Assembly: GCF_000150275.1 (NCBI RefSeq)
Contig: NW_002060944.1
Coordinates: forward strand, 8,198,735-8,262,734
Direction of reading: 5' to 3'
Source: Trichoplax adhaerens
Taxonomy: Eukaryota; Animalia; Placozoa
DNA length: 64,000 bases
The notes below the pieces were generated by a model. The model did not search any database. It worked only from the letters and a program-made list of their open reading frames with translations, and was not told the DNA's origin. Position numbers and translations under genes: made by a program. Below are positions 53,586-58,666 of the stretch, in pieces (the stretch's first letter is position 1; each line of letters opens with the position of its first letter).

Positions 53586-53730
53586 ATTATTTAATTTAAT
53601 TAGTCGTTCATATTTTGATTGTTACTTGCTAGTTATATCAAGTATCCACGACTGTAGATAAAACAATCAAAATATGAACGACTAATTAAATTAAATAATA
53701 GTGGATACTTGCAGCAACTAGCAAGTAACA
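53586..53730. repeat. Interleaved double inverted repeat
   Basis: Perfect 38-bp inverted repeat at 53586-53623/53662-53699 plus a 26/30 inverted repeat at 53620-53649/53701-53730. Confidence 0.95.
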
Positions 53731-53861
53731 GTCTATGGTATTATCCTTCCCGTAAGTCAACGACTAATAAGCACGTAAATAATTTTATTTGAAGCTACTT
53801 TATTAATTCCATTTAAACTAAATATAACTAAATATACGACTAAGGCAAGAGATCATAAGGA

Positions 53862-56417
53862 TCAAATGCTAATAGAAGAAGTTGGAGACAATGTCTGTAT
53901 GACATGTGGTAGTTTAGTAGTTAAGCCAAAATTTGGGCAAACAGAGGGACAAGTGAAGACTAATTCTTCTGTAGTTTTTGTTAAAGTTTCAATCAATGGT
54001 GGACAGCTAATGACAGTTCTTGAAATTGTAGTAGTGGTATAAACTGTTTTCGTTGAATGAATACAGATACTTGACAAACTTTCAAGTGGCTCAGTAGATA
54101 AACTTTCCAATTCGATAAAACTAGAAGTCGAAAGAATATCTGACTTAACTGAGCTAGTAACAACAGTAGTAACAATTTCTGGTACAGATGTTTCGGTACT
54201 AGTAAGAAATTCTTCACTTTCCTCTGAGGAAAAGACTAAAGATTCAGATTCGCTTTCTAAAATACTTGATATTTCACTTGAAAGAACGGATGTACTTTGC
54301 ACAACATCGGAACTGCTTACGCTGCTTCTTGTACCAATAGAAGATGATGAAACAACGCTTGTCGTCTCAATTATGCTCGAGATTTGACTAGTTATTTCTG
54401 ATGAAACAACGCTTATCGTTTCAATTGTGCTCGAGACTTCACTAGTTATTTCTTGACTTGATGAAACGGCCGTTGTTGATTCTATTTCTTCAGAAGAACT
54501 TTCTACCTCAGAAGAACTTTCTATCTCAGAAGAGATTTCACTACTGACAAATTCAAATGATGATATTTCGCTTTCTTCGACGATCGTGGTAGAAGGTTCG
54601 ATAAATTCGCTTGATTCAACACTAGTAGTAATTTCCACAGGAGTTGAAGATATAACCAGTGATTCCACTCTAGTAGTCGTCATCCTTCTGCTTGATACCG
54701 TAGAAACTGATCTGCTAAATATGAAAGTCGAGGTAGACGATGATGTCGGTACGCTAGAGGTTTCTGGTACGCTAGATGATGTTATAATACTTGAAATAAC
54801 GCTTGAACTTTCTATGGAACTTGTAATCTCTACTCAATGATAAAAAAAAAATGAATGTAAACTCATTCTACATATTCGTAAATTAGGCGCGCATATTATA
54901 CTATTTACTGAGTATTCATACTATCCATCAAGGCAAAATCTTTACATTATCACAAATAACTACAAAAAAAGCGTAGACAAAAATACAATCCATTATTTAC
55001 CATCTTCTCGACTTGATATCGGTTGAACGATAGAAGTAGTACTTGGCTGTGGAATGATAGACGATGTTTCCTTATCACATTCAATTTTCTTATACCATGA
55101 TTGACAGTTCTTCAAGGTTTCTATTACGGAGAATATTAGAATGTCATTGCATCCGAGATGTTTATTCTAAGGATAATCTAGGAAAGACTTGAATATAAAA
55201 CTTACTTCTTGATCCAAGATAAACCTTGCATATTTCATGCCAATTTAATTTACGATACCATACAGCAACTTGGCTAAATTTAGCATTTGTCGTTGTTTTA
55301 TGGTGAATCGATCGCCCAAGTAAAAATTTAGTAAAATTATAATGCGATGGAGCGTAATGGTATCGGCTAACTTCACATTCTTTTGTGTTCACAAAAAGAC
55401 GAAATTTTTTAAGTCCGTTAAAAGTAAAAAGAACATGAGCCCATTTGCCTATAATTCTAGACGGAATCGTGGAGTAGTAGATAAAATTGCCAACGGAAGC
55501 AATAAAGTAGGGGTGTTTGCCGGAAAATAATGCGATTCTAAAAAAATCTTTTAATCCGCCAGCACTAACATAATAACCATCATTATGATAACCATATCGT
55601 GCGATCATCTTGATCCATAAACTGACGGTTAAACCGTTAGTACAAAGTGATAAATTTCCTAAACATTCATTGGTATATTCACCAAGATGCACCCAGCTTT
55701 GGCCATCTGTACCAATACCACCCGGTTGAGGAGGGCATGGCCATAAAACAGCAGCATAGTGTTTAGCTGTACCATCATATTGACCGCAGACATTCTCAAC
55801 TGTTTTACCGTTCTTCAATTTACTTAACGGCCAAAATTCGTCGGCTCCACAAAACCAATTTTCTATTGATTTCAAAGTAGAATTCAGTTTAAAACCAGTT
55901 AGAAATATAGTTTACTGTCGTTTTTAATTAGTATACTGTATAGTCTGACAGCCTCCAAAAAGATTACTTCAGTTTTTATTAAAGTAAATTTATTGTTAGA
56001 TCCTATATTATTATTAACTTTAGATAAAAAAATTTAAAGAATGCGGAGATACAAAAGAAATACAGTTAGAGATCTACCTTGCTATTAAAAAATACAGAAC
56101 TTACTTTTACCCTTGTGGTGATGATAATAATCATCATAAACCCAGCCTGGAGGATATGAATCGTATGACCAATGCGAATTGTGATGATAACCGCCATAGC
56201 CATGCCCGCCCTGATGATCATATTGATCATTGCCGTGGCCATATCCTGCCTGACATAGCAAACTCGAACCTAAAATTATAACAAGCTTGATAGAGATATA
56301 AAGATTGTCAATATCGCAATCGATTATAGTGAATAAATCAGAAATATTAGTCGCTATTTAAAATGAAATTGAGATTTAAAAATTACGAAAACTTACAATT
56401 GAAGCTATTTTCAGCAT
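53862..56417 (-). CDS. Secreted His/Tyr/Gly-rich + LamG/pentraxin-like + Ser/Thr-rich mucin-like protein (648 aa, 5 exons)
   Basis: Exons 56397-56417, 56105-56285, 55206-55862, 55001-55120 and 53862-54829 splice in frame (1947 nt). Signal peptide MLKIASILVIILGSSLLCQA. Concanavalin/LamG3-type motifs FWPL, CLGNLSLCTNGLTVSLWIK, GKWAHVLFTF, LFVN, VAVWYRKL. About 300 aa of S/T/E-rich tail. Confidence 0.85.
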
Positions 56418-58666
56418 GGTGGTTGGTATTTGCCGAGAAATATCTGCAGCGATAGAGGCTGTTATTATATCAGCGATCGGCGAAAAAGAAGGCTGGTTTG
56501 CTGTTCTCACGCGTTTAAATCTACTCCTTGAGGGCTTCACAGTACTTTATTTGATTTTGAATCCGTCAACTTTACAGTCAACATCGTGCGAGATTTTATC
56601 CTATTATAGACGGTATAGTCCGTCCTGTGACTGATTCATTCTTGAGGTAAAATTTTTAGGACACCTTCAAGATGAAAGTTAAAGTTGAAAAAGATAAAAA
56701 TATTTTTAGTAGGTAAGATATCGTTAAACTTTTCATCACTATTCGATAAAAGAAACTTTAAGCTAGCTGTGATTGCGTTCATTTCCTCAATCATGGATTA
56801 CCGCGCCATTTAAATGAAACTTTTTGATAGCTTTTAAACGAAAAAATTATTGTCGTTCTAAATAATATCGCTATTACCTAATATGTGAGTATCATTTAGG
56901 CAATAAAAATGCCCTATCAAAGCGTGTCAATTATAAAAAATACTTACGTCATAAAATCAACAAATCAATACATAAACGCAAATAACCAAAGCTGTCACAA
57001 AGTATCCTTATTTGCCGGATTAGGAGGTAAGCAAGCAATCGTAAGCTGAGGCTTTGCCAAACCTTTATAAGCAAAATTATCACGTGGAATAAGAGTGATA
57101 TGCCAAAAATTAATACAGTTCGATCAATAATATCCCGTGCATAATAACCAGATTTCATCACGCTTTCATAACTTCGTGATTCTGCTCTCTGACGTCGTCT
57201 TAGTTGTTACGCAAAAGATCTCGTCAATGCAGGATAAGATAGAAGTAACCTTACGGTGGTGCTATATTTTGAATTTATAACTGGATAGTAAATATTGAAC
57301 ATGGCAAGCCTGGACTAAATTTAAACGCCTTCAAAATGATGATCTTAGATCAATAGCAGGATATAGGAAGGCAGATAATGTATGTGCACTACAATGATCC
57401 ATTTCACTGCAATAATTGCCCAACGCGCATTAAAACAAAATATAGTTTGTGTTGAATTCTTTATTGCTCACGTAAGGAATCTAGACCACCTCAACGAATG
57501 AAACAAACACCCCCAAAAATCTTACAAAGGTAGTAAAGATTATATCTGTTCCGTAAGATCTTATTCACTCCCCAGAAATTTCGGTTCATGAGCCGTTGAA
57601 ATATGGGTGGGTAGCAAAGCTACACTGCATCCGATGCTCGTTACTGAAAAGCCATTTTTTGTATGCACCTAAAGCTATTTTTAATACTGAATACTGGTTA
57701 GATAAGAAATTAATACTATTCTTTAGAAAGTTGTTCATTTTGGTGGTAATGCTCACTATAGTCATGCTCACTATATATAGATAATTAAACTTGTAAAAGT
57801 CAGAATGTGTTATAGTTTAGTAATGATGAGATTCAGATTCGAAAGGGTGCGGCTACTTTGCATACTTGTAAAATGCGCGAATATGTAAACGACAGCAACA
57901 TGCATACATAAAGACTTACATCTAGCTGTAACATGAGAATCATTTGTAATCATCTGTCGAACTACTTTTAGATTCCACTTATTCGTAAGAAAAGCAGAGA
58001 ATGCAGCACCTGATCCTCGTATTAAACATTATTTTATAACGGCTACTGTAAATTGAACATGAATTGCCATGTGTGCAATTGGCACCAAACTTCAGAAATA
58101 CTTGATCATTATTTTTTTATTTCTATATGTTGAAAAACTGAATCGATTATTCGTTTGTTTACTTCAACTGAGTTATCAATACTAGAAGTCCATGACTACT
58201 ATAAGATTAAGGATATCAAGTCTTAAACATACTTATCAATATGCAATATCTTCAGTGGATGTTGCTTGCGGATAGTTTAAACTACTGTACCGCGTTTAAA
58301 TAAATCCAAACAACGAATTATCTATTTATTGTAGACTATTAACGACTTCATTTTGGCCAAATGCGGTCATTATAATTTGACTCTTCAAGTTTAAATCCTT
58401 GGTGAATATTGCTCATTTCAAAGCATAAGAAATACGAGTTATTAATTTATTAAATCAATTTCCAATCGGATTATCGCGGTAAAACACTAAAAAGCGCTTT
58501 AGTCATACGGCTGCATTTCGTCCGCCAGAATAGTTAGGATAAAATGTGTAAAATAGATGTCGTACCATTTCTTGATATTATACTTCAATCAAGGCTTAAA
58601 TTGACGACATCTGTTTTACCATCTAGGTGTACAGTACTTTACTGTATTATGAACTAACGTTGGTAT

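Follow-up and report, generated by a model that had tools for sequence, protein, structure and literature searches.

A Trichoplax gene for a predicted secreted protein with a LamG3 head on an acidic Ser/Thr-rich stalk, and an H2 paralogue that continues into a 7tm_2 remnant

The DNA analyzed here is a stretch of 64,000 nucleotides from Trichoplax adhaerens, called the window in the following, which corresponds to G000:C1413:8198735-8262734 of the H1 assembly (105.6 Mb in 1414 contigs). Our subject is a minus-strand gene (56417-53862) that encodes 648 amino acids in five exons; exon numbers and coordinates refer to window positions throughout. Exon 1 (56397..56417, 21 nt, phase 0), with ACCACC before the ATG, contributes MLKIASI, the start of a signal peptide. 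Exon 2 (56105..56285, 181 nt) supplies the remainder of the signal peptide (LVIILGSSLLCQA) and a His/Tyr/Gly-rich segment with HHHKGK(K) at its end. The entire Laminin_G_3/pentraxin-like jelly-roll, with seven Cys and two N-X-S/T sequons, is encoded by exon 3 (55206..55862, 657 nt), and exon 4 (55001..55120, 120 nt) encodes a two-Cys linker, after which Ser/Thr-rich sequence begins. Exons 3 and 4 are both of phase 1-1, and it is in symmetric exons of this kind that shuffled extracellular modules are classically encoded. The first 250 codons of exon 5 (54078..54829) specify an acidic disordered tract rich in Ser, Thr, Glu, Ile, and Val, and its last 71 codons together with the TGA (53862..54077) a Thr-rich tail with four Cys (C..C..C...C) and an end that is not hydrophobic. 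On the same strand, a TATA-like ATATAATAA at 56462..56470, 45-53 nt 5' of the ATG, is a putative core promoter, and AATAAA polyadenylation signals lie at 53799..53804, which is 57 nt 3' of the stop, and at 53784-53789.

All introns are bounded by GT...AG and measure 111, 242, 85, and 171 nt; their GC content of 23-31%, which was computed with earlier borders of exons 1 and 2, compares with 32-45% in the exons. Exon 1 ends at a strong GTAAGT donor. The exon 2 acceptor caag|CTTGTT at 56285 keeps the frame and restores the 20-residue signal peptide (MLKIASILVIILGSSLLCQA|GYG) that had been originally predicted; the same acceptor is used in the public model from Trichoplax sp. H2. An alternative acceptor at 56269 clashed in frame with the exon 1 donor and was rejected in favor of 56285. 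A second frame, open as well, runs through exon 2 (56066-56242, minus strand); its very hydrophobic, Met/Ile-rich reading is a by-product of GAT/CAT/TAT codon bias. Use of this second frame was worked out by hand and rejected, as joining it to exon 3 brings a stop.

The H2 orthologue is RDD45703.1 (TrispH2_002736, P0001), likewise a protein of 648 residues, the first seven of which are identical to the product of exon 1. The exon translations align to it without gaps and with two substitutions in 645 residues, and the gene DNA of H1 and H2 is 99.2% identical. Together with the GT-AG borders, this gapless placement bears out the five-exon structure of the original prediction. Full-length searches and folding were carried out with RDD45703.1, and the window exons were used singly. 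The public H1 model, TRIADDRAFT_53836 (P0145, 492 aa), is mis-spliced: it uses a later exon 2 acceptor (tgtcag|GCA), by which the signal peptide loses its hydrophobic core, and it also removes 156 residues of the Ser-rich tract as an intron. The longer form of the gene is backed over this model from 2008 by the H2 model and by an H2 paralogue that is described below. The locus is an intact and selectively constrained Trichoplax gene, the protein of which is known in databases as a hypothetical protein.

The signal peptide comprises residues 1-20, with a Lys in the n-region, an ILVIIL core, and C-Q-A ahead of the predicted cut; AlphaFold2 predicted a helix at residues 2-15. As originally claimed, the protein has neither a transmembrane segment nor a glycosylphosphatidylinositol (GPI) signal: in a Kyte-Doolittle scan of all exons, the highest 19-residue mean in any exon was about 1.0, and no GPI-like tail was found, the last 16 residues being polar and the C-terminus not hydrophobic. 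No GAIN/GPS match was found in RDD45703.1, and the H2 paralogue gave none either. As a transmembrane segment, a GPI signal, a GAIN domain, and a seven-helix receptor domain are all lacking, the protein is predicted to be released as a secreted, anchorless molecule.

Behind the signal peptide, residues 21-67 form the His/Tyr/Gly segment, which is 47 residues long instead of the 45 first assigned to it. His, Tyr, and Gly account for 57% of a 40-residue stretch within this segment; exon 2 holds nine His, nine Tyr, and ten Gly, and the segment closes with HHHK-G-KK. It is disordered in the AlphaFold2 model, with a predicted local distance difference test score (pLDDT) below 50 for residues 20-66; disordered regions of this model are uninformative as to structure.

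The head domain encoded by exon 3 matches Laminin_G_3 (PF13385) with an E-value of 1.4e-21 and 77.6 bits, compared with a cut-off of 27.6, and covers profile positions 3-151 of 151. In the AlphaFold2 model, the core from about residue 67 to 293 is all-beta with a pLDDT of 70-95, except for a loop at residues 93-113. Foldseek connected it to ConA-like lectin domains (E about 5e-9), and VIA-align superimposed 190-210 residues on lectin-like ConA-fold domains with Z-scores of 15.5-16.7 and a root-mean-square deviation of 3.1-3.7 A, among them the trans-sialidase lectin domain, clostridial Hc-N domains, and domain 4 of an arabinanase. The model and these alignments display the two-sheet jelly-roll of the ConA-like superfamily, and the single LamG/pentraxin-like jelly-roll that had been proposed is thus confirmed at the level of profile and predicted fold. 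When exon 3 by itself was searched against PDB sequences, nothing was found; PDB pentraxins (Limulus SAP-like pentraxin with E 8e-14, PTX3, and NPTX1) were reached only with a profile built from 80 LamG3 family members. The Pfam family Pentaxin (PF00354) was matched neither by exon 3 at E<=1 nor by RDD45703.1 at E<=0.01. The HxCxS/TWxS signature is absent from the translation, the corresponding strand reading GLTVSLWIK.

A helix is predicted at residues 275-303, with a confidence that drops past about residue 290, and the chain then enters the stalk. By composition, this tract of about 250 residues is 35% Ser, 15% Glu, 13% Thr, 11% Val, and 11% Ile, and Pro amounts to only 2.4%; Glu, Ile, and Val together make up about 37%; exon 5 as a whole contains 30% Ser, 15% Thr, 13% Glu, 11% Ile, and 10% Val (Ser plus Thr 45%) and carries a net charge of -33. 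The stalk contains internal tandem repeats of 54 nt (two copies) and 18 nt (2.4 copies). The acidic Ser/Thr-rich character of the tract thus agrees with the original prediction, which had put its length at about 300 residues, but its Pro-poor and acidic nature casts doubt on the label "mucin-like" given in that prediction; VWD, C8, and TIL domains are also missing. The short four-Cys tail, also foreseen, lies in exon 5, with all four Cys within the last 67 residues. A search of the ESM Atlas with this tail gave scores below 0.8, which is noise level, and no family lead, and neither the Cys tail nor the His/Tyr/Gly exon has a further copy in the H1 genome. The mature protein contains 13 Cys, all of which are conserved in the H2 paralogue, and the odd number might leave one of them free for intermolecular bonding.

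That the protein is lineage-specific, as had been proposed, holds as far as our searches reach. A full-length word-based search of 5.8 billion clusters matched three proteins only, all from Trichoplax H1 or H2, and no relative of the same architecture was found outside Trichoplax. The same type of search with exon 3 alone gave nothing at E<=1e-5 and no fragmentary orthologues. HMMER with exon 3 against 1.84 billion cluster representatives identified only 143 LamG3 matches at E<=1e-3, the best of which from outside placozoans share 24-29% identity. The nearest relatives beyond the protein's own cluster, all at 24-33% identity, include large proteins with EGF_CA and multiple LamG3 domains, some of which also carry GAIN and 7tm_2 (Acanthaster, Ptychodera, Antedon, Lytechinus, Patiria). 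Other relatives are a "toxin candidate" from the tube anemone Pachycerianthus with an astacin-TSP1-LamG3 arrangement, an astacin/C-lectin/TSP1/LamG3 protein from a hemichordate, and a crinoid protein labelled ADGRD1-like; one distant match (P0102) has a LamG3 head that is followed by a Thr-rich repeat tract. Based on these relatives among ambulacrarian ectodomains of a type that adhesion G-protein-coupled receptors (GPCRs) have, we assign the head to an animal PTX-like (pentraxin-like) LamG3 subtype with a conserved CLGN...C..G.T.S.W.K strand, a subtype that is common in adhesion-receptor ectodomains. About ten further LamG3 sites exist in the H1 genome, and at E<=1e-3 none of them matches exon 3. 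Ranked second genome-wide for Laminin_G_3 (E 9e-20) is a site at a distance of 3.1 Mb on the contig of the window gene (G000:C1413:5131605-5132132, plus strand), which lies in an uninterrupted open frame of 1071 residues and is too distant to match exon 3.

A new finding of this analysis is that H2 possesses a paralogue of the window gene. TrispH2_002530 (P0144), an 841-residue hypothetical protein of the RDD46... series, is 76% identical over all 648 residues and shares the five exons, the His/Tyr/Gly tip, the LamG3 domain, the stalk, and the four-Cys tail. Its stalk differs in length by a net deletion of 52 residues. Past the position at which the window gene stops, it reads on through GFRRRRAV and a linker into five transmembrane helices, which match PF00002 (7tm_2) at positions 22-168 of 250. 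The RRRR could be a furin-type polybasic site. Helices 6 and 7 lack a reading frame downstream of TrispH2_002530, and a word-based search with its receptor region matched only TrispH2_002530 itself. The gene lies on another H2 contig (L018) than the orthologous locus. For its flanks, its receptor exons, and its neighboring gene, no orthologous match was found in the H1 assembly; the locus is either H2-specific or unassembled in H1.

At the nucleotide level, the two genes are connected by a block of 4.4 kb with 77% identity (53873..58280 on the minus strand against L018:8138-12433), which spans 1.86 kb 5' of the ATG and the gene itself and ends 9 nt short of the stop codon. Within the block, the exons are 81-92% identical (exons 2-5 87-92%) and the introns and upstream region 73-81%. 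Beyond the breakpoint, where MAFFT had suggested a 30-nt indel, local alignment detected no significant similarity, as 81 of 500 shuffles reached the score. Using the Nei-Gojobori method, we determined a Ks of 0.33 for exons 2-5 and ratios of nonsynonymous to synonymous substitution (Ka/Ks) of 0.14-0.23 for each of them (0.15 for exon 2, 0.14 for exon 3, and 0.23 for exon 4), the His/Tyr/Gly and Ser-rich exons included; exon 1 with its seven codons was too short. These ratios indicate that exons 2-5 are under purifying selection and that both copies are constrained at the amino-acid level, and by these estimates the duplication is old relative to the split of H1 and H2.

The layout of the protein can be compared with three known systems. 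In PTX-type adhesion GPCRs such as ADGRG4, the N-terminal part consists of a pentraxin-like/LamG jelly-roll followed by a long Ser/Thr-rich stalk (PMC10687090). The window protein resembles these receptors (ADGRG4/GPR112 and ADGRD1/GPR133) in its head and Ser/Thr stalk, and the nearest relatives of its head are found in ectodomains of this type. However, the window gene lacks HRM, SEA, GAIN/GPS, and the seven-helix domain and encodes a soluble four-Cys tail instead; in addition, it has the His/Tyr/Gly tip, its stalk is short (about 250 residues), acidic, and Pro-poor, and its head is just 24-29% identical to that of any such receptor. The features that define an adhesion GPCR of class B2, GAIN/GPS and a seven-helix 7tm_2, are thus missing from the window gene, and of the latter, the paralogue carries positions 22-168 of 250 only. 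The original statement that no named family shows this architecture holds insofar as no full-length relative was found outside Trichoplax, but the layout of head and Ser/Thr stalk is known from PTX-type adhesion GPCRs. With classical pentraxins (SAP/CRP, PTX3, neuronal pentraxins), the protein has the ConA-like beta-sandwich in common, but it differs by the missing Pentaxin match and HxCxS/TWxS signature. Gel-forming and membrane mucins are similar in their secretion, which is predicted for the window protein, in a long, disordered Ser/Thr-rich tract with tandem repeats, in length variation, here between paralogues, and in Cys-containing ends, but the window protein has no VWD, C8, TIL, CK, or SEA domain in Pfam, and its Pro content is low. 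The mucin of placozoan mucocytes is a different protein, which has VWD, TIL, and C8 as well as Pro/Thr/Ser (PTS) regions (PMC12013895).

The explanation that we favor, and that we consider somewhat better than an even bet, is that the gene encodes a soluble extracellular protein whose flexible stalk bears a ligand-binding head and which would amount to the N-terminal portion of a PTX-type adhesion GPCR (ADGRG4/ADGRD1 layout) in free form. The signal peptide would direct the protein into the secretory pathway, and the mature chain would present, in this order, a disordered tip of 47 residues, the LamG3 domain, a disulfide-bearing linker, the acidic stalk, and the four-Cys tail. The stalk is probably O-glycosylated and/or phosphorylated and may act as a hydrated spacer, while the rim of the LamG3 domain may bind a ligand, either glycan or protein, that is exposed on prey, on microbes, on the substrate, or on the surface of the animal itself. 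Cross-linking that depends on pH, metals, or oxidation could be made possible by the His/Tyr tip and the odd, 13th Cys. These properties would suit a secreted lectin or an adhesive component of a surface coat, and the mucus, adhesive, or defense role first suggested for the protein is compatible with a free ectodomain.

As the paralogue joins the same ectodomain to RRRR and a five-helix 7tm_2, the comparison suggests that the head occurs in a secreted form, encoded by the window gene, and in a membrane-tethered form, encoded by TrispH2_002530. One may go further and regard the two as a free and a tethered version of one adhesion-receptor ectodomain that arose from the 4.4-kb segmental duplication, with the free form serving as a surface-coat adhesive or microbe binder and the His/Tyr tip as a pH- or metal-switched cross-linker, but we propose this extended version only tentatively and regard it as rather unlikely in its entirety.

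Several points weigh against a secreted, ligand-binding ectodomain. The signal peptide was assessed by eye and by the AlphaFold2 helix, and both expression and secretion of the protein are predictions. The gene identifiers did not turn up in papers or supplements, the placozoan cell atlases and the metaproteome of H2 among them, and no record of expression, proteome, or cell type was obtained. Residues for ligand binding were not identified. The Pro-poor stalk rich in Ile, Val, and Glu is unlike a classical mucin PTS region, which makes heavy O-glycosylation uncertain. Finally, as the receptor domain of the paralogue is truncated (positions 22-168 of 250, without helices 6 and 7), the model of TrispH2_002530 may be a fusion of the duplicate with a receptor remnant, which would weaken the notion of a secreted and a tethered form.

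The homology with the 7TM-bearing paralogue, ending 9 nt before the stop, also permits a less favorable view of the window gene, namely that it is a truncated partial duplicate of an ancestral LamG3-stalk-7TM receptor gene that was cut off in exon 5, met a stop three codons on, and is functionless or decaying. A stop and an AATAAA are indeed expected soon after a random breakpoint in AT-rich DNA. However, the open reading frame is intact in H1 and H2 with two amino-acid differences, Ka/Ks is low in exons 2-5, the exons are better kept than the introns, and 13 of 13 Cys are present in both copies. Moreover, the damaged module, with only five 7tm_2 helices, sits in the paralogue and not in the window gene, and a truncated origin would still allow the function of a soluble ectodomain. 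We therefore consider decay of the gene unlikely. That transmembrane or GPCR exons further downstream were simply missed, as the course of the paralogue into transmembrane helices could suggest, is an idea to which we give almost no credence. The stop is soon followed by AATAAA, and the H2 annotation places the gene end at the same stop codon. The 3.3 kb from the stop to the UBE2O start contain no minus-strand open reading frame that resembles the paralogue tail, tblastn of TrispH2_002530 against the window gave no match for residues 596-841, and none of the 101 7tm_2 matches genome-wide lies near the window on the same contig. Such downstream exons had been named in the original prediction as the finding that would speak against it; there are none at the window locus, but the 76%-identical H2 paralogue does bear a partial 7tm_2.

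Two further alternatives were weighed. The HHHK-G-KK directly before the LamG3 domain, identical in the paralogue, raises the question of a pro-peptide precursor, in which cleavage at Gly-Lys-Lys would free an amidated, histatin-like peptide with metal-binding or antimicrobial properties, and the LamG3-stalk part would be a carrier or a second product. The disorder of the segment and its purifying selection (Ka/Ks as given above for exon 2) are in line with this idea, but the peptide is present as a single copy, unlike the typical multi-copy prepropeptides of placozoans, and has a net charge of -3 leaving His aside. In addition, the first Cys of the domain follows five residues past KK and the AlphaFold2 core begins near residue 67, which may place the site sterically within the fold, and altogether we judge a precursor improbable. 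The net charge of exon 5 and 17 S-x-E sites of the Golgi casein kinase type would suit an acidic phosphorylated matrix protein with an ion-binding Ser/Glu tract, for example for the aragonite of crystal cells or for another mineral or coacervate. A His/Tyr/Gly part together with a polyacidic Ser part is also reminiscent of tube-worm cements with their two components. Yet the number of S-x-E sites does not significantly exceed that expected from composition (z 1.4, with the number attained in 225 of 2000 shuffles), the runs of Asp that matrix proteins of calcifying systems typically show are missing, and the literature searched by gene identifiers provided no link to crystal-cell expression, which leaves a matrix protein highly improbable in our view.

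If the secreted ectodomain and the tethered paralogue were indeed a pair, they would show how heads of adhesion GPCRs are gained or shed by exon-level fusion in a basal animal. Placozoan gliding and feeding rely on secretions, and the majority of the abundant secreted products are uncharacterized lineage-specific proteins. The window protein is a tractable case for the ligands of PTX/LamG3 heads in early-branching animals and for the interconversion of receptor ectodomains and secreted lectins. Secretome surveys that are built on TRIADDRAFT_53836 would miss it.

With respect to the genomic neighborhood, the orthologous H2 locus (L019) is annotated with HID1/dymeclin, a CCDC39-like gene, and UBE2O as neighbors, and the open reading frames that flank the gene within the window agree with these. 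The assertion that it is the only secreted-protein gene among intracellular genes was looked at for these immediate neighbors alone, on the basis of the H2 annotation. H1 and H2 are near-identical across the gene and its 3' flank up to 53600-53700, where they diverge by an insertion or rearrangement in an inverted-repeat region just downstream (L019:12700-12810 in H2).

Two observations were made next to the paralogue on L018. The adjoining minus-strand gene (L018:15928-17836) encodes 391 residues without a Pfam domain, and its paralogues are limited to three distant ones on H1 contig C1409, which share 50%, 30%, and 29% identity; a transposon identity was considered and dropped, as there was no Pfam match and only these three H1 paralogues were found. 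A repeat of about 283 bp at L018:19719-20001 occurs at 40 or more H1 sites with 91-95% identity, for example at G000:C1411:7736763-7737045, and is probably an element similar to a short interspersed element (SINE) or a miniature inverted-repeat transposable element (MITE).

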